Made by a program: the position numbers and the translations under genes
Notes under the pieces: generated by a model
Told to the model about the DNA's origin: nothing
Database searches by the model: none
Seen by the model: the letters and a program-made list of their open reading frames with translations, nothing else
Source of the DNA: Narcine bancroftii
Lineage: Eukaryota
Direction of reading: 5' to 3'
DNA: 64,000 nt
Assembly: GCF_036971445.1 (NCBI RefSeq)
Contig: NC_091473.1
Coordinates: 207,638,001 to 207,702,000, forward strand
Shown: positions 25,131-58,640 of the stretch, piece after piece
Layout of the letters: the number at the start of each line of letters is the position of its first letter
Position numbering within the stretch: position 1 is the stretch's first letter

Positions 25131-25908
25131 CAGTTGTGCTGACAGACAGACTTGCCCAAAGTTCCTGAGAAACTAGTGTCCAAACCTTGATCTTGCCACC
25201 ATTATGTCATCTTTCTTTCATCGGGTGAGACTGTTGCTTATCGGACCAGCATTTATTGTTCTGCTCCAGTGACTGACTTGCCAGGCCTATCAGAGACACT
25301 GATGAATTTGGTGAGTGACTGAAGGCGAAAGAGTGCAAAAGGCAGGTGAACTTTACAAAAGGTCATCAGTGAACCTGTTAATCTTCTGTTCCTTTCCCAG
25401 TTTCACCCTCACTTCGACTGCCCACAGCAACTCATATCCTGCTATTGCTTTCTAGTTTAAAATCCTGCACTGTCCCTTCAAGTTGTGCGTCGAAGCCATT
25501 CTCCAGAGGCTGTTGAGCATAACCAAGCGTTGCCCTCCTCTGTGTTGGGCTATTGAGGTGTTCGACAAGATGTGGTGGAGGCAGATACAATTGGGTCTTT
25601 TAAGAGACTTTTGGAAAGGTACATGGAGCTTAGAAAAAAGACCTATGGGTAAGGCTGGTCATTTCTCAGGTAGGGACATTATTGGCACAATTTAGTGGGC
25701 CGAAGGGCCTGTGTTTTAATGTAGGTTTTGTATGTTTTTCTGTGAAATTGTATCAATGAATATATTTGCTTCTGTTCTATGCATTCAGGTTATCAGCTCC
25801 CTCACATAAGCACAACAATGCCTCATCGATCTTTCAGTGAACTAACTTGGCCCCAGTTTGTGGCATAGAGAAAGGTGTTTAAGATTAGGGTGAATCCCAG
25901 AACCGTAC

Positions 25909-26226
25909 CTTGCATGTTTTTCACCTCCCGGCTGATACTGGTGTTGGAGGGGGGATGAGACACTATACAGCTGAAGACTGAGCCTTTCTTCCACTCATCT
26001 GTCCTCACTGTCAGGAAGTGGCTGGCACTGAAAGTGCCCACCTGCTCCAAAGCAGTCCGTGTAGTGGGGGTGTTGGAGGAGATCAGGGAGCTGTCTTTCT
26101 CCCAGGTGACATTTATGAGGTCCGGGTAGAATCCAGAGACCACACACTCGAGGGTGGCCGTGATCCTACTCTTGGTATCGTCATGTGTTGGCGGCAGCAG
26201 ACGGACCTCAGGCCCTTTGATCTCGA
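25909..26226 (-). CDS. IgW: IgW constant exon CH8 (CH4-like duplicate)
   Basis: Acceptor TTCCAG|, 318 nt, donor CAAG|GTACGG. Encodes VEIKGPEVRLLPP...TLECVVSGFYPDLINVTWEK...EWKKGSVFSCIVSHP; C1-set Cys/Trp/Cys intact. Confidence 0.92.
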
Positions 26227-26314
26227 CTGGAACAGACGAGCAAAGAAAGGAGACGTCAACATTTTTACTCAAGGTCACAGATGTTGTCCATCTAATCACT
26301 GATCTTTTGCCCAC

Positions 26315-26617
26315 CTTTGGTACTTTGTGTCTGTGCTGAGACTGGCGAGGACGAAGAAGATCCTTGGGTGGAACAAGTGTACACTGCCCCACTGTACCAC
26401 TCCTCCACACTGGTCTGAAATTGGCTGATCACTGTGCTTTGTGTCCCTTCCTCTCTCGGTTGTTGGGTCACATTTCCTTTCATTTTCTCCCTTCCGCTCA
26501 CCTGCCAGTATATTTGGACCTGGCTCAGATCAGCACCCACAACCAGGCACACCAGAGTAGCGCTCTTGTTGATCCAAATCTCTTCAGTGGATGGATTTTG
26601 TAAAAAGATGGATAATT
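26315..26617 (-). CDS. IgW: IgW constant exon CH7 (CH3-like duplicate)
   Basis: Acceptor CTGCAG|, 303 nt, donor AAAG|GTGGGC. Encodes ELSIFLQNPSTEEIWINKSATLVC...IYWQV...EEWYSGAVYTC. The 88-nt intron to CH8 mirrors the 85-nt CH3-CH4 intron. Confidence 0.92.
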
Positions 26618-32393: not shown

Positions 32394-35300
32394 GCAGGCG
32401 GCGGCCTCGGCCCCGGTCCGGGCAGTATGGACCGACCTAGGAGGGGAGGCAGGCCCCTCCAGCCCGGGTAAGAAACCTGCATAGGAGAAGGCCACTCCGA
32501 TATAAAACCTACGACCCAAGGACCTCGCTGCCACGTCCCAGCTTGCTTGGCCACGGCACACGAACCATGGGTGTAAAGGGTGGGGCCAGTACTGCGCGCA
32601 CTGCACTCCACCTAAAAGCTCCTTTGCGCAGGCCCGAGGACAGGTCCACGTCCTCCCCCTCCACGTCCTCCCCCTCCACGTCCTCCCCCTCAAAAGATGC
32701 TCACAAACTCAGGCTAGCATGCTGGAACATCAGAACCATGCTAGACAAGGCTGACAGCCACCGACCTGAACGTCGGTCTGCCCTCATTGCACATGAACTC
32801 CTCAGACTTGACATCGACATAGCCGCTCTCAGTGAAGTCCGCCTGGCAGATGTAGGCAGCCTCCGAGAACGCGGCGCGGGCTACACACTCTACTGGTCTG
32901 GCAAGCCTTTGGATGAACGACGCCTATCTGGTGTAGGCTTCATGGTCAAGAGCTTCATTGCCTCCAAACTCGAAAACCTTCCGACAGGCCTCTCGGACCG
33001 AATCATGTCCATGCGACTCCCACTTCAAAACAAGCGTCACATCACCCTCATCAGTGTCTATGCTCCAACCCTCCAGGCGGAACCAGCAGAAAAGAACAAG
33101 TTCTACACCGACCTGCGCAACCTCATCCAACGTACCCCTACAGCCGACAAGGTTGTCATCCTGGGCGACTTCAACGCTCGTGTCGGCAAAGACTCAGAAA
33201 CCTGGCCAGGAATCCTGGGCAAGCATGGCGTCGGCAAGTGCAACGACAATGGGCGCCTCCTGTTGGAGCTCTGCGCAGAACAGCGACTTGTCATTACAAA
33301 CACCCTTTTTCAGCAGAGGGACAGCCTTAAGACCACCTGGATGCATCCCCGATCCAAACACTGGCACCTCCTGGACTACATCCTGGTGCGAGAAAGTGAC
33401 AAACAAGATGTGCTCCACACCAGGGTCATGCCTAGCGCGGAATGCCACACTGACCACCGGCTGGTTCGCTGCAAGCTCAACCTTCACTTCAAGCCAAAGC
33501 CCAGGAACAATAAAGCCCCCAGAAAGAGGTTCAATGTTGGAAACCTGCAGTCAGACGAAGCGAGAGGAAACTTCCAGGCAAACCTCAAAGCAAAGCTCGA
33601 CGTTGCAACCCGCCTCACGGACCCGTCCCCTGAAACCCTCTGGGATCAGTTGAAGACTACCATACTGCAATCCACTGAAGAGGTACTGGGCTTCTCCTCC
33701 AGGAAAAACAAGGACTGGTTTGACGAAAACAGCCAGGAAATCCAGGAGCTGCTGGCAAAGAAGCGAGCTGCCCACCAGTCTCACCTTACAAAGCCGTCCT
33801 GTCCAGAGAAGAAACAAGCCTTCCGTCGCGCATGCAGCCATCTTCAGCGCAAACTCCGGGAGATCCAAAATGAGTGGTGGACTAGCCTCGCCAAACGAAC
33901 ACAGCTCAGCGCGGACATTGGCGACTTCGGGTGTTTCTACGAGGCTCTAAAGGCTGTGTACGGCCCCTCACCCCAAGTCCAAAGCCCGCTGCGCAGCTCA
34001 GACGGCAAAGTCCTCCTCAGCGACAAGATCTCCATCCTCAACCGATGGTCAGAACACTTCCAATCTCTTTTCAGTGCCAACCGCTCAGTCCAAGATTCCG
34101 CCCTGCTCCAGCTCCCTCAACAGCCCCTAAGGCAAGAGCTGGATGAGGTTCCCACCCTGGATGAGACATATAAGGCAATCGAACAACTGAAAAGTGGCAA
34201 AGCAGCAGGTATGGATGGAATCCCCCCAGAAGTCTGGAAGGCTGGCGGCAAAACTCTGCATGCCAAACTGCATGAGTTTTTCAAGCTTTGTTGGGACCAA
34301 GGTAAACTGCCTCAGGATCTTCGTGATGCCACCATCATCACCCTGTACAAAAACAAAGGCGAGAAATCAGACTGCTCAAACTACAGGGGAATCACGTTGC
34401 TCTCCATTGCAGGCAAAATCTTCGCTAGGATTCTACTAAATAGAATAATACCTAGTGTCGCCGAGAATATTCTCCCAGGATCACAGTGCGGCTTTCGCGC
34501 AAACAGAGGAACCACTGACATGGTCTTTGCCCTCAGACAGCTCCAAGAAAAGTGCAGAGAACAAAACAAAGGACTCTACATCACCTTTGTTGACCTCACC
34601 AAAGCCTTCGACACCGTGAGCAGGAAAGGGCTTTGGCAAATACTAGAGCGCATCGGTTGTCCCCCAAAGTTCCTCAACATGATTATCCAACTGCACGAAA
34701 ACCAACAAGGTCGGGTCAGATACAGCAATGAGCTCTCTGAACCCTTCTCCATTAACAATGGCGTGAAGCAAGGCTGTGTTCTCGCACCAACCCTCTTTTA
34801 AATCTTCTTCAGCATGATGCTGAACCAAGCCATGAAAGACCCCAACAATGAAGACGCTGTTTACATCCGGTACCGCACGGATGGCAGTCTCTTCAATCTG
34901 AGGCGCCTGCAAGCTCACACCAAGACACAAGAGAAACTTGTCCGTGAACTACTCTTTGCAGATGATGCCGCTTTAGTTGCCCATTCAGAGCCAGCTCTTC
35001 AGCGCTTGACGTCCTGCTTTGCGGAAACTGCCAAAATGTTTGGCCTGGAAGTCAGCCTGAAGAAAACTGAGGTCCTCCATCAGCCAGCTCCCCACCATGA
35101 CTACCAGCCCCCCCACATCTCCATCGGGCACACAAAACTCAAAACGGTCAACCAGTTTACCTATCTCGGCTGCACCATTTCATCAGATGCAAGGATCGAC
35201 AATGAGATAGACAACAGACTCGCCAAGGCAAATAGCGCCTTTGGAAGACTACACAAAAGAGTCTGGAAAAACAACCAACTGAAAAACCTCACAAAGATAA

Positions 35301-35949
35301 GCGTATACAGAGCCGTTGTCATACCCACACTCCTGTTCGGCTCCGAATCATGGGTCCTCTACCGGCACCACCTATGGCTCCTAGAACGCTTTCACCAGCG
35401 TTGTCTCCGCTCCATCCTCAACATCCATTGGAGCGCTTACACCCCTAACGTCGAAGTACTCGAGATGGCAGAGGTCGACAGCATCGAGTCCACGCTGCTG
35501 AAGATCCAGCTGCGCTGGATGGGTCACGTCTCCAGAATGGAGGACCATCGCCTTCCCAAGATCGTGTTATATGGCGAGCTCTCCACTGGCCATCGTGACA
35601 GAGGTGCACCAAAGAAAAGGTACAAGGACTGCCTAAAGAAATCTCTTGGTGCCTGCCACATTGACCACCGCCAGTGGGCTGATAATGCCTCAAACCGTGC
35701 ATCTTGGCGCCTCACAGTTTGGCGGGCAGCAACCTCCTTTGAAGAAGACCGCAGAGCCCACCTCACTGACAAAAGGCAAAGGAGGAAAAACCCAACACCC
35801 AACCCCAACCAACCAATTTTCCCTTGCAACCGCTGCAATCCTGTCTGCCTGTCCCGCATCGGACTTGTCAGCCACAAACGAGCCTGCAGCTGACGTGGAC
35901 TTTTTACCCCCTCCATAAATCTTCGTCCGCGAAGCCAAGCCAAAGAAAA
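32394..35949 (+). mobile_element. Near full-length RTE-clade LINE
   Basis: 12-bp TSD ATCTCTAAATTT at 32382-32393 and 35950-35961. ORF from ATG 32567 to 35893 with APE endonuclease (CWNIRT, LGDFNARVG, TDH), RT (FVDLTKAFD, QGCVLAP, FADD) and a C-terminal zinc finger. Confidence 0.95.
32567..35893 (+). pseudogene. RTE endonuclease/reverse transcriptase ORF with one premature stop at 34799-34801
   Basis: ORFs 32543-34801 and 34814-35893 are in the same frame, separated only by TAA in PTLF*IFFS. Confidence 0.9.
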
Positions 35950-36199: not shown

Positions 36200-37310
36200 G
36201 AATGCAGCCGCCTGAAAGCGAATGCTGAGGGGATGACAATATGCTGGTGAGCGCTTGACAGCTCCCCTCGCTGCTGCCCTGCCCGCTGGCACAGGACGTC
36301 AGGGCAGGGGCAGTGGGCATGGGCTGTCAGTGCTGGGGCAGCCAGCACGGTCAGTCAGGGTTGAGGTGACCGGCGCGGTCAGTCAGGGTTGAGATGACCA
36401 ACGCGGGCTGTAGGGGTTGTAGGGCTGTAGTGGTTGGGGAGGACGGCGCGGGCTTTAGTGGTTGGATTGGCCGGTGCGGGCTGTAGTGGTTGGGCCTGCC
36501 AGTATGGGCTGTCCCTATACTGATCCCACTTATGTGGGACAGATTAATTTGTTGCTTTCCAATGCAGCCACCGAACACCAAATGTTTGTTGATAATCTGC
36601 CCACAGCCACGCCAAACCTTGAGTGCTCTCCCCACAGCCCTTAATCAGTCCCAACACTGTGGGGCGGCCGGTGTGGGCAGAGCAGTGGGATCAGTGTGGG
36701 GACCAACATGTGGCTATGGGGAGAGAGCAGAGCAGTGGGATCAGTCTGGGGACCGACATGGGGCTAGTTTAATTGGACGGTAATGTTTGGTGCACACATT
36801 GTGGCCAAATGGGCTATTTCTGTGCTGTCCTGTTCTTTGTTTTAGATATTCATTATATTTAGTGTTTGCATTTCTCTTTGATAAACTAGCTGGGTTTTTA
36901 TTTGCCACCGTGATGTCTTTTGCTAACTGGTTCATGTGTAAATTCTTCTGTACCATATATTTTTCCTAATGCCTCTGCTAGTTCAAACTCTCTGCCGGTC
37001 TGATTCCTCTCAGAGCACTGAAGGTTTGACTTGGCTGTCGGCAGATTCTCAACAAACATTTGGTGCTCGGTGTCTGCATTGGAAAGCAACAAGTTAATCT
37101 GTCCCTCATAAGTGGGATCAGTATGGCAACAGCCCACGCCGGCCACCCCAGCGCTGACAGTCTGCGCTGCCCACCCCAAACCCTGTAGACCACCCCACCT
37201 CTGACAGCCTGCCGCCCCAACCCTGACAGCCCGAAGGGACAGGAGCCAGAGTGTGCTCCGAGGCACCTCCCTTGCAGCTTTCCCTTTCAGATGGCCAGCG
37301 CTGCACTTTC
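36200..37310. repeat. Imperfect inverted repeat pair
   Basis: 36490-36630 (ATACTGATCCCACTTATG..GGACAGATTAA..TGTTGCTTTCCAATGCAG..ACCGA.CACCAAATGTTTGTTGA) is the reverse complement of 37012-37150. Weaker similarity extends outward. Confidence 0.8.
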
Positions 37311-43615: not shown

Positions 43616-44001
43616 TTATGCACAAGAGGTAAAACTATCAGTGAGAACAAGTGAGACATTGACCGAGGTGGGTTTGCTGTGAGATTTATTGATGCTTCTG
43701 AACAGATTAGTTGTGAGCGACTCATGTCCCACCACGCAGGAGAAAGTGGTGCCATGATCCCACTCCTCTGGAGAAACCTTCAACTGACTGGTCATCATGT
43801 TCCAGCCACTTCTGGGGTCCTCGGTCACTGGCTGGTTCACGTAGCCAGTCTTCAGAAGGATGTCGTTGGCCATCCAGGCCACGTAGATGTCTGCAGGAGA
43901 GAACTTCTTGACTAGGCACATCAGGGTTGCAGACTGATCGCCCTCTAACTCTTCTGATGAAGGGGGGAGGAGGAAGATGTGAGGAGAAGTCACAACTCCA
44001 C
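43616..44001 (-). CDS. IgW: IgW CH6 plus secretory tailpiece
   Basis: Acceptor TTCCCAG|, encoding GGVVTSPHIFLLPPSSEE...TLMCLVKKFSPADIYVAW...FSCVVGHE...KPTSVNVSLVLTDSFTSCA*. Tailpiece has the NVS sequon and penultimate Cys. Confidence 0.96.
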
Positions 44002-45095
44002 CTGGGAACAGAACGAACCTCAGTTAGGTTGCATCTTTCAATAATTCTGTGCTGAACCCACACATTGTGCTTTCAAACCAACATGGGCAACTTCTACATC
44101 TTGAGGGATTTCACTTTACCTGACACTGGAGCCTTTTCCCTTTCTACTCATTGTTGGGATGTGCAGGGTGGAAGCCTTGACTCGGACACATTTTAAAGCT
44201 TCCAGAGAGGTTTGTCTGTTTCGTTTAATCAGTGGAAGCCACTGATCACAGAGACTCCACAGAAAGTGGGTCAGACCATGGACTTGACTCATCCTGTGCT
44301 GTTTGGTCCATCTCCCCCTCTGCTTCAATGATCTGCTGAACTTCAGTCTGTGCCTCAGCCTCCCTGCCCTTCCACCCACTGCCTTGACTCAGTCTCTCCC
44401 TCAGGGTTTGAAAGCTGCAGATCCTTCTCCCTCGACATCATCACAGGAACTCACCCCGCAGCTGAGTTTGGTTTTGGATGAGGCTGCTGTGGTGATTTGG
44501 GGTCTTACTGGTTTTCTCTGGAGGCTTCAGTCTTCCTTTGCTCCTTAATATTCTCTGACCAACATGAGAAGACCTTCTCCAAGGCAAAGAAGAATGTGGG
44601 GAGTCTCATGGAAACTATAACATTCTGAACTGATTGGACAGAATCGATACTGGAAGAATGTTCCTGATGGCGGCAGAATCCAGGAACAAGGGTGACAAGC
44701 TGAAGATGGTGTGAGAGGAGGAATGATAGAAAGGAGAATGGTGAACCTAGGGAATTCTCTGCCACAAAGAGCAGTTGAAGCCCAGTGAGTAAATATATCC
44801 AAAGATGAGCTGGATATTGTTCCAAGGGTAAAAGTTCAAGGGGCATGGAGAGAAGTCAGGAATAGGGGGCGCAATTTGAATAATCTGCTTTGATCATATT
44901 GAATGGCTAAGCAGCAATGAAGGGTTGAATGGCCTACTTCTACTCTCTAATTTTCCCTGAGACAACCACACTGCTGAATGGTGACATATGCTTTGCTTCT
45001 GTACATTACACAATGTAAATGACAAAACCTCAGTATTTATTATCATTCCTCTACTTGCTTAGATCAGAATCACACCAAGCTCTCTCTTCACGTAC

Positions 45096-45416
45096 CTGTG
45101 GCCTTCTTAATGGACCTCTTCTCCGGTGTTGGCAAACTCTTGTCCTCCACCACGCACGAGTACTCAGTTCCTATCTCCCACTCCGCAGCGGGCACCGTCA
45201 GTCTGCTGATAATTATGTCTTCACCTCCGTTCCTATTTGGACCCTGAGTTCTCACCCCATCTTTTCTCTCACTTCCATCCACTTGCCAGGTTACCCTGAA
45301 TCCCTCTAAATCACCATGGACCACCTCACATAGAATGGTCGCCGTCCTGTTCATCCAGATCTCTTCGAAGGAAGGTTTTCTTAAAGTGACTGAGGGGCTG
45401 GTATCTGAACAGTCAG
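45096..45416 (-). CDS. IgW: IgW CH5
   Basis: Acceptor TTTCTCCCAG|, 321 nt, donor ACAG|GTACGT. Encodes ADCSDTSPSVTLRKPSFEEIWMNRTATILC...VTWQVDG...EWEIGTEYSCVV. Confidence 0.95.
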
Positions 45417-46451
45417 CTGGGAGAAATGTCATAATTATTATTTTGTAGAGGCTCACTGGAGGCTTAATCGAACCAGCTCAAGAGGTTCCGAGTGATGTCA
45501 TGATATTATTTGGAACGTACGGTGTTTTCAAAATCTGCGCGTGACTGTTTGAGTAAAAGACTTTTACTGAACTTCAACTGGACTATGTCTGATCATTTTC
45601 TCATTCTTCAATACACGCTGTAAACCAGTTGCTACAATTTCACCATTCCCCAAAGGATAGGGCATCACTGGTGAGACCAACATTTCATATTCATCTCCAG
45701 CAAATCATTCGTTGGTCGCATCAGATCAGTCGAGACTTATCTACATTGATGGAGGAATGAGATTTCCCCAATTGAGCAGACAGGGTAAACCCTTGTCAGG
45801 AATATCAATGAACAAATTTGTCTCTGATGTAAGTTGGACAGTTTCAAGGACACTTAAGCTGTTCCCAGCCACTTATTAAAACAAAAACAGAAAATTCCAA
45901 ACAATTCAGGCTGCACCTGTGCAGAGGGAAGCAGAGCTAATATTTTAATTCAGAAATATTCCAGCAATTTTCCTTGACATTTTTAAAATTCAAGCAGCAT
46001 CAGAAATAGTTGATCTTTATTACAACTGTTAAAATGCATTTGGCCTCCATGAAGTGTAACTGAAATCTCTTGCTGCTTTCTCAGAACGTTTTGTGTTCAA
46101 GCCGTCCTGCAGAGGCTTCCACATTGCCCAGGCTAACTCTTCCCATGCTGGAGCAGAGTGCTGTCCTGATGCAGATTCAGTCACGGCTGAGGCCATGACC
46201 AGAGGCCCAGATTACATTCAAAGACAGAAGGAGAGACCATTTGGAAGAGGGATATCCGGGATCTCCAGGGCACCTGGCCAGTGAAATAGTTTGTATTGTG
46301 CTCAAGTTATGAAAGCAATTATTTCTCTGGCCAAGATTCTGGAGGATCCGTTCAGTCATCAAACCATAACAGGTCTGCACCATGTTTCTGTCTGGCACAG
46401 TTTATAGCAAAAAGCAAACAATGTCAACAATGGAGTGGGTCGGGACCTTAC

Positions 46452-46769
46452 CTTGGAGGTTCCTCGCTTCCTTTGTGATGCTGGTGTTGGAGGAGGGATG
46501 AGACACCGTGCAGCTGAAGATTGAGCCTGTCTTCCACTCCTGTGAACTCACCGTCAGGAAGTGGCTGGCACTGAAAGTCCCATCCTGCTCCAGAGCAGTC
46601 TGTGTCCTGCTGGTGTTGGAGGAGATCAGGGAGTGACCTTTCTTCCAGGTGACATCAATGTGGTCTGGGTAGAATCCCGAGACCACACACTCGAGGGTAG
46701 CCACATTCCTATGCTTAGCCTCTTCGTATGGTGGAGGCAGCAGTCTGGCCACAGGAGGTTTTGTCTCAA
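46452..46769 (-). CDS. IgW: IgW CH4
   Basis: Acceptor TTCTGTTCCAG|, 318 nt, donor CAAG|GTAAGG. Encodes VETKPPVARLLPP...TLECVVSGFYPDHIDVTW...FSCTVSHP. Confidence 0.95.
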
Positions 46770-46854
46770 CTGGAACAGAAGAACAAAGAAAACATTGGAC
46801 TCTTTCTCACATCATCACTGATGTTTGTTATTTAATCAGTGATTTCTTACCCAC

Positions 46855-47154
46855 CTTTGGTGCTTTTTGTCCATGCTGAGACTGGTGAGGATAAATGATC
46901 TTGGGCAGAACACATGTACTCCATCCCGCTGGACCACTCCTCCACGCTGGTCTGGAGTCGGCTGATTATTGTGTTTTGGAACCCTTTCCTTCTGGGCTGT
47001 TGGGTCACAGCTGCATCACTTTTATCCTCTCCGTTCACCTCCCAGGAGATGTGGACTTTCTTCGGATCAGCAGAGATGACTGTGCACACCAGAGTAGCTG
47101 TTTTGTTGATCCATATCTCTTGAATGGAGGGATTTTGAATTGAGACAAACAATT
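46855..47154 (-). CDS. IgW: IgW CH3
   Basis: Acceptor ATCCACAG|, 300 nt, donor AAAG|GTGGGT. Encodes ELFVSIQNPSIQEIWINKTATLVC...ISWEVNG...EEWSSGMEYMC. Confidence 0.95.
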
Positions 47155-49388: not shown

Positions 49389-50022
49389 CTGAAAATGGAA
49401 GATGCATAGATTTAACCATTAGATATTCTCTCCTCTACTGGCTGCACTGAGAAAGGAAGTAGCTCCACACAGTCCCGACCTCTATTCTCTGCATTCACCA
49501 TCTTTTAGGGATGAGATAATGAAAACCAATGATGACCTGTTGTCCCAAGTTCTAATCCCAGTGTTTCTGAGGGGTTGGCCAACAGAATAATAATCCATCT
49601 TTGTGAGTGGATGACGTGCCAGGGAGATTCCTGGGATACTGTGGAGATAGACTGTGGAGATTCATTCACTCGGCTGGAGCTATTTTTCCAGAAACTGAGA
49701 CTGCAAAGTGAAAAGTGAAGGTGGAGATCTTCTCCACATGGTCTATCGGTTGGGACACATCTTGCTTGATGTCCCATTTCCCTTTCACTCCACACAGTAA
49801 CCACAAGAATTATGTGGGAGTAAGTGCACAGGAGACTTAAACTTTCACTTTTGCTGTACAACAGATTGGGTTAAAATTAGTGACGGAAAGGGTTGGATTG
49901 AAATGTAGAGGGAATAAATATCACACCTCACTCAACAGGACTCCCATCGGGGACATGAATTGAGTGGAGGTCAGCTAGTTGAATACTGTAAGTAAATTAA
50001 TTCTCCTTCAGACACCACTCAC

Positions 50023-50325
50023 CCCCCTGATATCTCATGACGATCTTCTCACTGAAGCTGGAAGGTTTATGGGTCACTTCACAAGAATATTCTTGTTCGC
50101 TGGTCCATTCATCCACAGACAAGGTCAGGTAGGCAACAGTTTCAAATCCACCATCAGTTTTCATGGAAGGGAGAAGAGTGCCCACTTGCTCTGATTTGCC
50201 TTTTTTCCAGGTCACCTGAATCTTGTCAGGTGAGAATCCAGATATCACACAGCCTAGGATAGCAGTTGTTTGATTGCTGAGAACCTCCGGGGATGGAACA
50301 AGAGGCATGAGCTTTGGAGATTGAG
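50023..50325 (-). CDS. IgW: IgW CH2
   Basis: Acceptor TTTTACAG|, 303 nt, donor GGG|GTGAGT. Encodes TQSPKLMPLVPSPEVLSNQTTAILGCVISGFSPDKIQVTW...EYSCEVTH. Confidence 0.95.
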
Positions 50326-50748
50326 CTGTAAAACAATGCAATGTTAATGCAATATTACTGATGGCATAACTGGCCACAGTGTAGGTGGACTCCATTCCCC
50401 AACTCCATTTGCAAATGCCCCAACAGCAGCCCACTCTACAAATCTGATCATTACAGATGGCCTGTCGTAGGATGGATCCTATCGTGAGATGTTGGGTAGA
50501 GCTGTGATTGGGAGATCAAGGTGTACAACACAGGCCTCCCCAGCATTATGTCCCACACTGCAGTGTTGAGGGGGTTGAACGAGGAAGTGGCCTGTGTGGG
50601 CAGACTATTGGTGATCTGATTGTTTGGTGGAATGGCTGACTCCAGATCCTGTGGATATGAGCAGATGGGGTAGAACAGGACATTAGGGAAGCACAATATT
50701 GAGGACAATCAAAAAGAAGAACAGATGGACAAGAGGAAATTATTTGGT

Positions 50749-50940: not shown

Positions 50941-51237
50941 CTGAAATTAGATAAATGAGTGGATACAATGGAGGCTGTTCAGCACAGATTATTTCCTGTA
51001 CATTCCACCAAAATTCAGTTTCATTGACTGGAGGAAACTGCCTCATTCTCCGTCTATTTCCACCTAATTTCTCTCTGCCTTTTTTGTGCGCTACAGCAGC
51101 ACTGGCTTGTAGGAATGGAAGAAATGAGTAAAGGAATGAATGGACATCCTTGAACATTTTTTGACAAAGGTTCCTGCTCTAGTTTTATCTCTCGACAGTA
51201 ATGTAGTTTCAAATAGCAAATCAAATCTCATACTAAC

Positions 51238-51552
51238 TTTCAGCGAATATTGGTTTTGTGCTTGCTGTCACGAACTCGGTTGACTTGTACCCTGCCTTGC
51301 AGTAGTAGATATTGTTGCTTTTCCAATCCGCCGCAGGGACTCGGAGCAAGCTGCTCATTGTGTACTTTGCATTCTGCCCCAACACTGCTGGATATTTCTT
51401 GATTCCGTTGGTGATGTCCCCACTGGCAGTGGACCATTTCTGGATGATGCTCTCAGGCTGATAATCCTTGACCAGACACAGGAGGCTGATCACTTGGTCA
51501 GATTCTCTGTGGCAGGGAGGGGCGATGAAGACTGACGGTAATGACTCAACCT
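51238..51552 (-). CDS. IgW: IgW CH1
   Basis: Acceptor TACTTTTCAG|, 315 nt, donor GAAA|GTTAGT. Encodes EVESLPSVFIAPPC (light-chain Cys) ...LLCLVKDYQPESIIQKW...YTMSSLLRV...YYCKAGY, an omega-type CH1. Confidence 0.93.
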
Positions 51553-54500
51553 CTGAAAAGTAAATAAATTCACAGACAGTCCTGTCAATAAATGCATGAC
51601 CAACAGATGAAGCAAACATCCAATGTCATTTCCAAATTCATTTACCGTGTTACAGAAATTGCTTCCCGACTTATGTCTCAACAGAGAGTATATGTCTCTG
51701 AGGGAGAAAGGCATGGAATAATCCAAGGAACAGCAAAAGGCAGCTCGGTTAGTGTAGTGGTAGCACAACGCTGTTACACCACCACCAACTGGGGTTCAAA
51801 TCTGGCGCTGTCTATAAGGAGTTTGTACGTTTTCCCTGTGTGTGTGTGGGTTTCCTCCAACCATTCAAATTGTACCAGGGTGTGTAGTTCAATTGGGTGT
51901 ATTTGGGTGGGACAGGCTCGTGGGGTGAAAACACTTGTTACCGTGCTATATGTCTAAATTTAATATTCAAAAATCCCACAGAGGAGATTTAAGCATGGCA
52001 TATAAGGTGACTCTCTCCTGCAGTACTGAGGCAGTGACCCAATGTCTGACGTGTGGGATTTTGATCAAAGTTGCACCAAATCTCTCCCTCAAATGCAACG
52101 AATGATCCTCAGTGAATGTTTTGCACCAGAATATTGTTCACAGAAAAAAGGAAGAATTTGGCAGGAAGGTTATTGTATAAATCAGAACATTTCACCGGTA
52201 ATGTTTTTGCATGGAATGAAGTTACACCGGCCTGAATACCTGAACCTCGTCAATATGAAATGTGTGATATGGTGGCACCTGGGGACTCTTCTTCTGAAAT
52301 TCAATTGAACTGACCCCACAGTGAATTTGTTCCTGCTTTACAGGTTTTCCAAATGTAGTGGCAGAGGAGCTTGATGAAGCAGGAGGGAATGTTAACATGG
52401 ATAAGAAAGGAATTTGGAAATCCATTAGCCCAGTCCTGAGTAAATGCAGGAATCTTGGAAGGTTGAAAGGTTCACGGAATACACAGCTCCCAGTGTCCAG
52501 AGAGGAAATGCACAAGTTAAGAGGCAGAATCTACTTGAAAGATCTGGTTCTCATTTGACTGGAAAAGTGCAACCAATGATCATGTGGTTACTTCAGCTAA
52601 TTCCTGGGCATTAATGGGTGCTTAGGTTTTCATTACTTTAATCTTCTCAATGGCTTGAAAAGTTGTGAATCATTTCTTAATGTTCAGTGTGTGACAAACG
52701 ACATCTCCTCTATTTCGTCCACATCTGCTCCAACTCCCCCTCTCCTCTTCTCCACATTTTCCACTTCTCCAGCCTCTCCATTCAACAGATCAACCTTGGT
52801 GATTTCTGCCACCTTCAATGAGCTTCCACCACCAGGTGCATCTTCCCCTTCCCTTCCATTTCAGTGCTCTGAAGGGACTGTTTTCCTTGCACCTCCCTTG
52901 GCCACTTTTCATCTCCACATTTCACTCCCCTTACAGCACTCTCCCTGCAACCACAACACTTGCTTTTTCCCCTCTTTCCTCACTCTCCATGGATTGTTTA
53001 CAAATAAAGGGATATCCAGCAAGTGGGATTCCAAATGTGAGATAGGTGGACTTCAGGACCAACATGATCCTGTTAAAACGCAGGATAAAACTGGTAGGAG
53101 GAGGGAACCTTGGACAATGAGGGATTTCAAGGATCTGGTCATGGAAAGACAAGGAGGCACATGGACAAGTTGGGTTGAAGGGTTGGTTTCTGAGCTATGA
53201 CTCCATGACAGATTTGATAGCAGGAGATTTTGTTTTGGCCCATTGTCAGAATTATCTGGAGCAGAGTTGTGGGCAAGACTAGTCTTGGCCACCAAAATAG
53301 AGTCACAGAGTCAGAGAGGGTTGAAACAGTCCCTTTGGCCCTACTTGCATGCACTGACCAGAATGTCTGACCCACACTCATCCCACCTGCCTGCTTTTCA
53401 TGTCTTTCCCTCCAAATTTATCCATGTATCAATCCACATTTTTCTTAAAACATGCCTCAACTTCCTCTTCTGCCAGCCCATTCCATACAGCCACCACCCT
53501 CTGTTTAAAAAAGTTATGCCTCATGTTCTATTGGATATATTCTGCGAATGAAAGGATAGTGAGCAAACTTTGGCCAAGATTTCAATTAGGTGGAAAATAA
53601 AATTACAAAATATTTACTTCACAATAGTTTCCTCCAGTAGATGGAGGTGAAATGTTGAACTGCAGTGCACAATGGTGCAGGAGAAACTCAGCAGGTCACT
53701 CAGCACTGATGGGAAGTAAAGGGTAACCAGCATTTCAGCCCTGAACCCTTTGTCAAGGTAATGAACAAAAAGCAGTGTTGATATCTTGCTTCAAAGACAT
53801 TATTCAACCAGATAGCAATGGCCATGATTCCCAGGTGTCAGCTTCTCTGAGGATCTGTCCTGGAGCCTCCATTTTGATGCAACCACAAAGAAGGTTCCCC
53901 AGTACCTATACAACCCAGACCTGTGTTGTGGTGAAGTGTCACAGGACAGGAGGTAGCTGGACCATAACTACACTCAATGGGCTGAATGGCGCTGGTCTGG
54001 CCTGCTATTGGGACTCTCCCCACCCTGCCACACAGGAAAAGGTGGGACCTGGCTGGGCCTCAGGATGTTGGAGACCTGCAGTGAGGAGCACCAAGACCTC
54101 AACACCCTATGGTTTCATTTCTGGGTCTCTGGGCCAAGAACACCCTGACACAAAGCAAACCTGGGTTAGCAAAGCTGTCATGTAACATAACAAATTTAAA
54201 TGTCTGAAACATAAAAACTGACGTAAATTCTGCCACAAAAGGTACTTTGTTTAAAATAAGCGATCTACAGTTCACTGAAACCACAAAATGTACCCCGAAG
54301 TCCTTCATCACAAATGATCTTCCCAGATCTGCCGACCGAGAGTTCCCAGATGAATGGGGACTGTGAGCCTTTACCAGGCCAAACTTGGTAGGGAATCATA
54401 GTGTTGGAATCCCTCTTGTAATCCTGGGAAGCCCAGCTCCATGTGGAGAAGTGTGGTGAATGGCCCACTACATCTCAGTAAACTCTGTACAGTGGGTCTG

Positions 54501-55294
54501 TGCATGTCCAGGACTAACTGTAGTGCACGTGGCTGCACACTGTTGGTTCCCTTTGGAACTGCCACTCACTGCCAGCACTGTCTGATCCTGGTGAGCCTCA
54601 GCTTCATAAGGAGTCAGTAATTCAAGTAAAGGATGATCTGAGGAACCTCACTGCTCTTCATTGATGTCAGCCTTTAGTAATACAGGGATTCCTGGAGCAA
54701 AGAACTGGGATCATCTGGATGCCCTCCAGCCAATCAATGTCTGTCCATTCATCCACAGCAGAGTCATTCTTCAGCAGAGGAGTCCCCAGTGGAGGAGAAC
54801 TTTGGGAACTCGGGTCCCTCCCGACATCACTAAAGCAGACCGTCTGGACTTTTTCCTGGTTCCGTTTGTGGGACCAAGCTGCAGACAAGTTGGGTACAAT
54901 GTGTCTGCACCTCAAGGGCTAGGGAAGAGTTTGGGATGTTTTGGGGATATGAAAATCAATGAAAAACACAAATGAACTTTCACCAAATAAAAGGGTCAAA
55001 ATAAAAATGAAAGAGGCTGGGTGTCAAAAATCTGACTGAAGGACTTTAATGAAAGGCCATTGATGTAAAATATAATCTCTGTGTCCCTTCCCACAGAGGA
55101 TCGGAGAGCTGCCAAGTGTCTCTGGTGGAGAGGCACAATGTCAGTGAGTGGGATTTACATCCAAGGTTCTTCTACATCCCAAGATCTGCAGATTGTAAGT
55201 GCAATTTAATAGGGATCAGTGTTCTGAATGATGGTCAGGAGGTGAACTTGGAAAACACATCAAATCGTCAGCAGGGAGTCAAGTGTAGAGGGTT

Positions 55295-56120
55295 AGAAGC
55301 TGAGTGGGTCAGCAGGATGCTGGGATGGAGAGGGGAGAAGTGCTTGGTGGGACAGCAAGGTGCTGGGATGGAGGATGAGGAGCTGGGTGGGGCAGCGGGG
55401 TGCTGGGATGGAGAGGGAGGAGCTGGGTGGGACAGCAGGGTGCTGGGGTGGAGAGGCGAGAAGAGCTGGGTGGGTCAGCAAGATACTGGGGTGGAGAGGC
55501 GAGAAGTGCTTGGTGGGACAGCATAGTGCTAGGATAGAGGGGGAGGAGCTGGGTGGGACAGCAGGGTGTTGGAGTGGATGGGGGAGAGGAGCCCATTGGA
55601 CAGCAGGATAATGGGGTGGAGGGGAGATTTTCTGGGTGGGACAGCAGGGTGCTGGTGTGGAGAGGGGAGAGGTGCTGGGATGGAGGGGAGGAGCTGGGTG
55701 GGACAGTGGGGTGCTGAGATGGAGGGGAGGAGCTGGGTTGGACAGCAGGGTGCTGGAGAGGAGAGGTGAGAGGTGCTGGGTGGGTTAGCAGGATGCTGGG
55801 ATGGAGAGAGAAGTGCTTGGTGGGACACCAGTGTTCTGGGGTGGAGAGGGGACAGGAGGTGGGAAGTACAGCAGTGTGCTGGGGTGGAGATGGGAGAGGT
55901 GCTGGGTGGGTCAGCATAGAGTTAGGATAGAGGGGGGTGGAGCTGGGTGGGACAGCAGAGTGCTGGACTGAAATGGGTAGAGGAGCCCATTGGATAGCAG
56001 GGTGCTGGAGTGGAGGTGACAGGAGCTGGGTGGAACTGCAGGGTGCTGGGGTGGAGGTGACAGGAGCTGAATGGGACAACAGGGTGCTGGGGTGGAGGTG
56101 GGTTTGATAACACAGTGCTG
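55295..56120. repeat. G-rich ~40-bp tandem repeat in the J-CH1 intron (switch-region-like)
   Basis: About 20 degenerate units of GGAGCTGGGTGGGACAGCAGGGTGCTGGGGTGGAGAGGG. Confidence 0.9.
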
Positions 56121-56614
56121 GATTTTCCAAAAGAATAACCTGGGGATGTGGTTTGCAGCTCGGTTTGGATTCGGCCTCATCTCAGGAAGTGGAAAGAACA
56201 TCAGAAAAATTAGGCATTTTGACTCTAAACTCTGAGCCATGTTAATACATAATGTGGACTGAAATGCTTAGAGTTCTCGAGCATCTCTAAATATTGCAAT
56301 TCAAGAGAAAAGAGAAAGCAAATTTGTTCAGCTGAAAAATCACATCTCAACCGGGTTCACTGGAACCCTGGGGTTATTCAGACTTTAACCGGATCACACA
56401 TGTGCAGACCTTTTCCCCAGCCAGGTCTTATCTAACAGTTATAACCACGAAAGCAGCCGACAGGAAACCCCGATTCCAGTAACTGGAGAAACCGCCCGTC
56501 TCGGGGAGATTCAAGTAATTGCTTCAATATCTCACTGGCCTCAGTGAATCAGCTCAAAGGGCAAATTAATAAAATACAAATGGGAAAGGGTAGAATGGAG
56601 AAGTAGGGTCTTAC

Positions 56615-56659
56615 CTGAAGTCACTGTCAGCGAGGTTCCTTTCCCCCAGTAGTCGAGCG
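56615..56659 (-). CDS. IGHJ: JH gene segment
   Basis: Encodes LDYWGKGTSLTVTS (WGxG motif); donor TCAG|GTAAGA. Confidence 0.97.
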
Positions 56660-56698
56660 CACACTGCTCCGTCTCCCGACTCACCCAATACAGTAACT
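56660..56698 (+). other. JH recombination signal (23-bp spacer)
   Basis: CACACTG - 23 nt - ACAGTAACT. Confidence 0.88.
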
Positions 56699-57037
56699 TC
56701 ACTGAGCCGTCACCTCCAGTTATCTCAGCCAAGTGTCAGAATGAACCCTGTCCGGACCAGGAGCAGCCGCTTCCCAAATCTCTGTCACCAACTCCGTCCT
56801 CGTCTCTTCCTGACGAGCGAATAAAAGCAGCATTTTGGGCAGTTTTCCTGTCTGCGGGCACCGGCTCCCCCGCCCCGCGAGAAACTCAGTCGCCGGCTTT
56901 GGGGTGTTTAATTGCCCGCAAATGGACATTTCCTCAAACAGCCGCAGTCAGGCTTCGGGGATGTGACCCTGGGAAGCAGCAATGCGGGATCCGTGGAGAC
57001 AGACTGCGCTGCAGACGCTCATTTGTCGGGCGGGACC

Positions 57038-57109
57038 AGTTTCTGCTCAGCTCCCTACCACCGTGACACTCCAGCTAGAGTCACGGTGACACACCGCCGT
57101 TCAACAACC
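57038..57109 (-). other. IGHD: DH segment (57066-57081, ACTCTAGCTGGAGTGT) flanked by two 12-bp-spacer RSSs
   Basis: J-side RSS CACGGTG-12-GCAGAAACT (minus, 57065-57038). V-side RSS CACGGTG-12-TCAACAACC (plus, 57082-57109). Confidence 0.9.
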
Positions 57110-57420
57110 TCCGTCCCTCGCTCTGTCTCCGACCCCACTCTCCCCTCAGTTAAACCGTCCCGACACTGTCCCGGCTCACAGATCCCCTCCCATCCACACT
57201 GGCCAGGGGGCTGGGGCCGCCGCTTCGTGCTCCTGGTTCCGATACTCCAGTCCCATCCGCGGCGCTTGGCTCCGACCTGTTCTGTGATCGATCCCCTCGT
57301 CCTTCAACCACTCGCCTCCTATTGCAGGGAGGGCCGACGGGGGCACAGCAAGGCCGGGAATCCCTGTGGTGATCACTGCTGCCCTCTCACTCAGCGCCCT
57401 GAGGGCAGGCGCTCTCGCTG

Positions 57421-57459
57421 GGTTTTTGCAGCGGTCCAGCCCCGCTTCCTCTCGCCGTG
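57421..57459 (-). other. VH recombination signal (23-bp spacer)
   Basis: CACGGCG - 23 nt - GCAAAAACC immediately after YYCARD. Confidence 0.92.
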
Positions 57460-57757
57460 TCTCTCGCACAGTAATAGGTGGCCGTGTCTTCCACTTTCAG
57501 CTTGTTCATTTGTAGGTAGAAGTTGTTACTTCGCTTGGAAGCGGTGAATCTGTCTTGGATTCCAGGCGCGTAATACTTGTAACTTTCGCTATAATACCAC
57601 ACCAACCATTCCAGCCCTTTCCCGGAGACCTGTTTCACCCAGTGCATGGAGTTGCTGCTGAGATCGAACCCTCTGGTCTCACAGGTCAGTCTGTAGGACT
57701 CCCCGGGCTTCTTCACCGCTGACGCGACCTGTGTCAGGACGACGTCGGACCGCACGC
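57460..57757 (-). CDS. IGHV: VH exon (IgW-type variable segment, unrearranged)
   Basis: Acceptor CTTTTACTGACAG|, encoding [10 protein letters not shown]...[11 protein letters not shown]...[15 protein letters not shown]...RFTASK...[11 protein letters not shown]. Confidence 0.97.
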
Positions 57758-57994: not shown

Positions 57995-58150
57995 GCGCTG
58001 TTTAAATGGGGAAGGGGCCAGTGAGAGGGAGAGAGGGAACCGCGGCTTGAACAGGCTCCCACCCACTGAAACCAGAGGGGCAGCTTCCTGTCCCCGCCCC
58101 CAGCAGAGATTTCAGTTCCCCAAAAGATGTTTGTCTGTGCAACAGGTGCA
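57995..58150 (-). promoter_or_regulatory. Putative VH promoter (octamer-less)
   Basis: TATA-like ATTTAAA at ~58001-58007, Ets core CAGGAAG at ~58084-58090, GC box GGGGCGGGG at 58092-58100, E-box CAGGTG at 58143-58148. Confidence 0.5.
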
Positions 58151-58209: not shown

Positions 58210-58640
58210 ATACCCCTGAGAGAGAGGGACTGGTCAGTGTTCAGATATCCCCTCAACCCCCAACCCCCAGAGAGAAGGACAGAGAGACACAGGTCAGTGT
58301 TCTGATATCCCCTGAAGGAGAGGTACTGAGAGACACAGGTCAGTGTTCTGATATCCCCCTGAGAGAGATGAACTGAGAGACACTGGACAGTGTTCAGATA
58401 TGCCCACCACCCCCACCCCCCAGAGAGAAGGACTGAGATACACCAGTCAGTGTCCGATATCCCCCCGAGAGAGAGGGACTGTGTACAGATCTTCCCGTGA
58501 GTGACAAAGAGAGACATCGGTCAGTGTACAGATATCTCCAAGAAAAAATAAATGAGAGATACCAGTGAGTATATGAATACCTCGCAATAGACAGGAATTG
58601 AGAGGCAATGTTCAGTGTACAAATATCCCCCTGAGAGAGG
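58210..58640. repeat. Degenerate minisatellite upstream of the VH promoter
   Basis: Repeated GAGAGACAC.GGTCAGTGTTC.GATATCCCC units. Confidence 0.8.

Follow-up and report, generated by a model that had tools for sequence, protein, structure and literature searches.

Shark VDJs are switched between Ig clusters, with AID as the presumed initiator, and cartilaginous-fish Ig loci have been described without switch (S) regions, which appear first in amphibians (PMC4279169, PMC8201067). The locus analysed here, a ray IgW-like cluster in a 64-kb stretch of DNA (the window, meaning the whole stretch), raised the question of whether a tandem array 3' of JH, in the J-CH1 intron, could serve as a switch-like break zone, and whether a high density of motifs would suffice for that by itself when the orientation does not favour R-loops. 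Set against the reviews' view that S regions start with amphibians, a hotspot-dense, transcribed repeat at the reported recombination place of shark clusters would make the origin of class switching testable; if the array is an inert minisatellite, the textbook statement stands. The reading favoured here takes the array as an old, degenerate 41-bp minisatellite of low copy number, fixed in the J-CH1 intron of an expressed IgW cluster, transcribed with the gene and proposed to act as an AID break zone. This switch-like reading is plausible but unproven, with a probability of roughly 0.44, and a minisatellite without function has much the same probability.

One V and one J were found in the window, both on the minus strand. 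The features of the cluster and the array are given below in the direction of transcription of the gene.

57460-57757, minus strand: VH exon (Pfam V-set E = 1e-15, and sequence).
57453-57459 (heptamer CACGGCG) and 57421-57429 (nonamer GCAAAAACC), minus strand: V-gene RSS with 23-spacer (sequence).
57066-57081, minus strand: D segment, with heptamers CACCGTG and CACGGTG on its flanks (read from sequence).
56660-56666, minus strand: JH heptamer-like CAGTGTG (sequence).
56615-56659, minus strand: JH coding segment (..DYWGKGTSLTVTS), the sole J-like motif in the window (sequence and RNA splice joint).
56613-56614, minus strand: splice donor GT of JH (sequence).
51553-56614, minus strand: J-CH1 intron, 5062 nt with GT..AG ends (joint 51552/56615 in RNA contigs).
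55286-56104, minus strand: tandem array in the J-CH1 intron (Tandem Repeats Finder, unit alignment, motif statistics and hairpin folds).
51233-51552, minus strand: CH1 exon (Pfam C1-set E = 4e-14, and splice acceptor); its start is 51552, and 51233 is the ORF limit and not a mapped 3' end.
49997-50434, 46847-47152, 46402-46752, 45088-45456 and 43616-43993, minus strand: CH2 to CH6 exons (Pfam C1-set per exon ORF).

The V, D and J segments lay apart and the D segment was flanked by two heptamers, and the cluster is therefore in its germline, unrearranged form. The heptamer of the V RSS was non-canonical and the nonamer was good. The V domain was closest to VH3-type V genes of turtles and bony fishes (up to 65% identity), and the V-exon search also matched one catshark gene (P0018). 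A TATA-like box was located near 58005, upstream of the V exon. Just upstream of the V promoter region, a ~47-bp tandem repeat occupied 58230-58480, with three copies called by Tandem Repeats Finder at 58269-58405 and degenerate copies beside them, and each unit contained GGGGATATC..AACACTGAC.

The C exons were found one by one, with Pfam run per exon, and not as a joined protein model, and CH6 (43616-43993) carried a secretory tail. With V, D and J segments of its own, six C-domain exons and a secretory tail, this stand-alone cluster fits the IgW layout given in a review, in which the long form has seven domains and each cluster six to eight C exons (PMC5192425), and on this sequence evidence the cluster is described as IgW-like. 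With regard to the isotype name, an Atlas look-up of the C regions returned generic C1-set clusters only. Two more intact C1-set exons (25823-26552, Pfam E = 4e-18 and 6e-6) were located a long way downstream of the secretory tail. The long intron that separates them from CH6 contained two plus-strand ORFs (32543-35893) of 752 and 359 aa, endonuclease- and reverse-transcriptase-like, which are read from their sequence as a LINE-type retrotransposon. The same large intron also contained a second G-rich tandem repeat (36298-36494) with 28-bp units and, by eye, no WGCW.

Four sequencing runs were matched to 51400-57399 at 80% likeness; the runs consisted of contigs only, and the matches therefore give location and not expression level. 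The joint 51552/56615, a minus-strand GT..AG splice that removes 5062 nt, was present in 20 contigs of run X7 and 2 contigs of run X5, and was absent from the DNA runs X1 and X9. It follows that X5 and X7 are RNA, that the cluster is expressed and that the intron is 51553-56614. Exact RNA contigs were obtained on the array itself (X5 records 13 and 14, at 55140-55442 and 55541-55862), and others on the rest of the intron. Because runs of 138-330 million letters are too small to assemble contaminating large-genome DNA, these contigs are most simply pre-mRNA. The array is thus transcribed, most simply as part of the pre-mRNA, in contigs that do not show the transcript strand.

Exact RNA contigs also spanned the unrearranged V-to-J interval at 56631-57399 (X5 record 16), and the germline, unjoined cluster is therefore transcribed too (sterile transcripts). 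One X7 RNA contig had JH joined to a cryptic acceptor at 52775 within the intron (minus strand, GT..AG, 3839 nt skipped), and the sequence after this acceptor was full of stop codons.

Tandem Repeats Finder placed the array at 55286-56098, with a period of 41-43, about 10 + 9 copies and 71-75% matches, and also showed weaker higher-order periods. Cutting and aligning 55297-56104 gave 19 degenerate units of ~41 bp each, with lengths of 39-43 nt. The array was 62% G+C and strongly strand-skewed in base composition. It lies in the 5.06-kb J-CH1 intron of the minus-strand V-D-J-C cluster, 3' of JH, with a gap of 0.51 kb between the JH exon end at 56615 and the array edge at 56104. In the 41-nt consensus obtained from the unit alignment, an AGCT near the start was followed by AGCA and TGCT. 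The consensus AGCT was TGCT in 5 of the 19 units, while AGCA and TGCT formed the arms of one 13-nt palindrome per unit, CAGCA-GGG-TGCTG. GGGTGGG and GGGGAGG boxes were present in every unit. A search for a 27-nt unit core at up to 3 mismatches gave 10 hits in the window, all within the array, and 0 in shuffles.

One sense-strand frame was open across the whole array (273 codons, 55309-56130), and the array could on that account be a coding sequence, an alternative Pro/Ser/Thr-rich hinge-like exon. This is highly improbable. Because unit lengths (39-43 nt) do not keep to multiples of three, the frame drifts between units; stop codons are rare in a strand with 52% C, and the open frame is an effect of composition. 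No protein relatives were found among 8000 scored candidates. The supported splice joints go from J to CH1 and skip the array, and none of the listed joints joins it. On the frame drift, the protein search and the splices skipping the array, a coding exon was rejected.

The WGCW count in the array was 45 in 808 bp (55.7/kb), about three times the background, whether this is taken from the remainder of the window (18.2/kb) or of the J-CH1 intron (20.2/kb). Among the 800-bp bins of the 64-kb window (mean 18.6, sd 6.0), the array was the top bin for WGCW. The pentamers GAGCT (11.1/kb) and GGGGT (12.3/kb) were likewise frequent, compared with a background of 0.9/kb for each. These results were in agreement with an earlier note on this DNA, which had described ~0.8 kb of ~40-bp units starting ~0.5 kb 3' of JH, three WGCW motifs (AGCT, AGCA and TGCT) per consensus unit and GAGCT/GGGT-type pentamers, and had named the comparison of WGCW per kb with background as a check. 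The extent, the start, the motifs and the pentamers were all recovered, and the array was found to be enriched.

The context of the cytosines differed between the two strands. Of the array's cytosines on the G-rich strand, 64% had a WRC context and 9% an SYC context, for which the window values were 23% and 26%. For the C-rich sense strand the shares were 13% for WRC and 40% for SYC, a cold context.

The same counts can be read in another way, with the array as a functionless G-rich repeat, Chi-like or minisatellite-core-like, that originated a single time in an ancestral IgW cluster and was then duplicated together with it, the WGCW motifs being accidental. Such a history is a strong competitor, at somewhat less than even odds. 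The chance tests speak partly against it: three or more WGCW per unit had P = 6e-4 in a composition-matched shuffle of the unit, 45 of the 51 GC dinucleotides in the array stood in the hotspot context W_W, and dinucleotide shuffles of the array gave a mean of 23.7 and a maximum of 37 WGCW against the observed 45. The array copies are, however, non-independent, so that these tests in effect sample a single ~41-nt unit, and the arms of one palindrome supply two of the three WGCW per unit; both points favour an accidental origin.

Conservation among the units also bears on this alternative. Motif columns mismatched the consensus in 12.7% of cells, against 18.7% for the other columns (p = 0.046). 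Specific protection of the hotspot positions was sought across the 19 units and none was found: AGCA and TGCT were intact in 14 of 19 units and were kept no better than TGGA, GGAG and GTGG (these and TGGG being intact in 14-15 of 19). The units were 72% alike on average, and the sole structure among them was an old block duplication with a lag of nine units. Given this low likeness, the old nine-unit duplication and the missing motif protection, the array is old and decaying. Hotspot positions that are not preferentially conserved, and divergent units with an old block duplication as in a decaying array, are what a functionless repeat would be expected to leave. Its polarity, opposite to that of mammalian S regions, points the same way, and an inert minisatellite fits the data nearly as well because it explains arbitrary polarity, decay and the absence of motif protection together. 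The reviews, moreover, place no S regions in shark Ig loci (PMC4279169, PMC8201067). Against a functionless origin, the array lies precisely within the transcribed interval 3' of JH in which joins have been reported for sharks.

The low copy number of the array was supported by the matches to the DNA run X1. At 80% likeness, the summed contig depth was 42-70 on the array bins and 39-52 on the unique flanks; this contrast of contig depths is not a copy-number estimate. Two other intervals of the same intron behaved differently.

51600-51999, no strand assigned: high-copy dispersed repeat in the J-CH1 intron (summed depth to 118,000 in X1, against about 40-50 in unique intron).
53400-53999, no strand assigned: second high-copy dispersed repeat in the J-CH1 intron (summed depth to 80,000 in X1).

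Together these two intervals showed summed depths of 6,000-118,000. Both were matched by thousands of contigs of 80-95% likeness, from DNA as well as RNA runs, and are probably SINE- or transposon-type dispersed repeats. The array was rejected as a dispersed minisatellite or part of a transposon, since it had no contig pile-up and no other copy in the window. The earlier note had named a common dispersed minisatellite, absent from other IgH clusters and without enrichment of junctions or mutations, as the combined outcome that would speak against its proposal; for the first of these three points, no pile-up was seen at 80% likeness.

At the array edge, X1 records 3 and 4 were contigs 83-85% identical to the flank that end there, and they fit paralogous clusters. 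Paralogous clusters would inherit the array by descent under a functionless origin, and the ~83-85% contigs ending at the edge are in keeping with this. Differences within the array were limited to a loss of 3 nt at 55613 and a gain of GAG at 55807, in contigs, which drop rare variants. Only 3-nt indels between individuals or paralogues are unlike a typical unstable minisatellite and count against that origin. A few rearranged contigs were found over the array, and these may be paralogues. Run X9 ("organism B") was identical over 442 nt of the array and is uninformative on divergence.

The strand polarity of the array was clear. Its plus strand was 52% G and 10% C, with a C-rich sense strand, and its G skew was the strongest among the 800-bp stretches of the window. 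Because the gene runs on the minus strand, this G-rich plus strand is its template. The caveat of the earlier note, that the G-rich strand here is the template strand and thus opposite to mammalian S regions, was borne out by the minus-strand gene and the G-rich plus strand. Five non-overlapping G4 motifs were found in the array on the template strand and 0 on the sense strand. R-loops are favoured by G-rich RNA, and sense R-loops and G4 switch RNA are important in mammals. With a C-rich sense strand that holds no G4 motifs, both sense R-loops and G4 switch RNA are disfavoured at the array. The array therefore lacks the mammalian-type arrangement of a G-rich non-template strand supporting R-loops.

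The same strand features allow the array to be seen as a candidate cis-regulatory or structural element, in which G-box/CACCC-type sites or template-strand G4 would hold back RNA polymerase II downstream of VDJ or open the chromatin there. Possible examples are an enhancer-like or pausing element promoting V-region hypermutation, or an influence on splicing. The five non-overlapping template-strand G4 motifs with the strongest G skew in the window, the GGGTGGG and GGGGAGG boxes in every unit, and a small hairpin that is possible in each unit (DNA fold z-scores: -3.9 on one strand and -2.8 on the other) are consistent with such an element. The array, however, contained no octamer, no CAGCTG or CAGGTG E-box and no CTCF consensus match within 3 mismatches, and a regulatory role of this kind is considered unlikely. 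In their specific forms, CTCF sites were rejected on the lack of a consensus match within 3 mismatches, and an octamer/E-box enhancer was rejected since neither motif was present in the array.

Returning to the array as an AID break zone, two traits of S regions were observed directly. It is a tandem repeat in the intron upstream of CH1 (55286-56104 within 51553-56614), and its transcription is shown by exact contigs on the array in RNA sequencing that also contained the J-CH1 splice. If transcription starts by the TATA-like box near 58005, the array would lie ~1.9-2.7 kb downstream of the start site in the germline form. V-D-J joining would remove ~0.75 kb and place the array at ~1.1-1.9 kb from the start site. 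This last distance is within the reach of AID in mammals.

WGCW provides a preferred cytosine on both strands, one base apart. With three overlapping AID hotspots per unit and 45 WGCW in 0.8 kb, opposed nicks would be likeliest here in the locus, because WGCW sets the preferred cytosines on both strands. If AID gains access to the cluster, closely opposed nicks could give double-strand breaks in the array. The array would then be a motif-driven break zone of the Xenopus S-mu kind and not of the R-loop-driven mammalian kind. Such a zone could feed inter-cluster switching as described in sharks, and selection for that use may have acted on the array.

The earlier proposal of a possible proto-switch region or AID break hotspot thus held in part. 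Position, transcription and WGCW density were in its favour, and R-loop polarity, shortness, sparse AGCT and the lack of hotspot conservation were against it. A wider claim, that switch-region-like DNA predates tetrapods in the form of a selected batoid IgW array 3' of JH serving as a WGCW-driven break zone without R-loops, is doubtful, and considerably more so than the break-zone reading itself.

The hotspot density of the array was compared with mouse S regions. In mouse, the 5625 bp of the S-mu intron contain 462 WGCW (8.2 per 100 bp, with AGCT at 7.68), and the 4918 bp of the S-gamma3 intron contain 160 (3.25 per 100 bp, with AGCT at 2.19) (PMC9149575 supplement). The ray array has 5.6 WGCW and 1.24 AGCT per 100 bp, with 45 WGCW in total against 160 for S-gamma3 and 462 for S-mu. 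Its WGCW density is therefore between those of the S-gamma3 and S-mu introns, whereas it is below both in AGCT density, length and total motif number; for AGCT the density amounts to half the S-gamma3 value and one sixth of the S-mu value.

Like mammalian S-gamma and S-mu, the array is tandem, located in the intron 5' of CH1, transcribed, and provided with GAGCT and GGGGT pentamers. S-gamma units are ~49 bp, and the unit size of the array (~40 bp) is similar. Unlike mammalian S regions, its G-rich strand is the template and not the non-template strand, its length is 0.8 kb against 1-10 kb, and it belongs to a stand-alone V-D-J-C cluster that is driven by the V promoter without an I exon.

The array resembles Xenopus S-mu in that its predicted action is through palindromic AGCT/WGCW hotspots and not through R-loops. 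Xenopus S-mu is AT-rich and several kb long, whereas the array is 62% G+C, strongly strand-skewed and 0.8 kb long. Zhang et al. 2015 are said to have found the repetitive core of Xenopus S-mu to be orientation-dependent, which would count against an inverted array. Xenopus S regions are able to substitute for mouse ones (PMC4279169).

With G-rich hypervariable minisatellites, the array shares units of tens of bp, G/C strand asymmetry and GCTGG/GGTGG-type cores. It differs from them in having units with just 72% likeness, in varying among the runs by 3-nt indels only, and in being confined to the intron of one gene family and not dispersed. No earlier description of such a repeat was found in the literature searched, which did not reach the primary shark-switching papers.

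The closest known setting is inter-cluster switching in the nurse shark, in which, reportedly (Zhu et al. 2012), switch joins between clusters lie in the intron 3' of JH. The two systems have in common the setting of autonomous IgM/IgW clusters and the intron 3' of JH, where the nurse-shark joins reportedly lie. They differ in that the nurse-shark system has been described as operating without switch-region sequence, whereas the intron described here carries a discrete, hotspot-dense repeat in a batoid IgW cluster.
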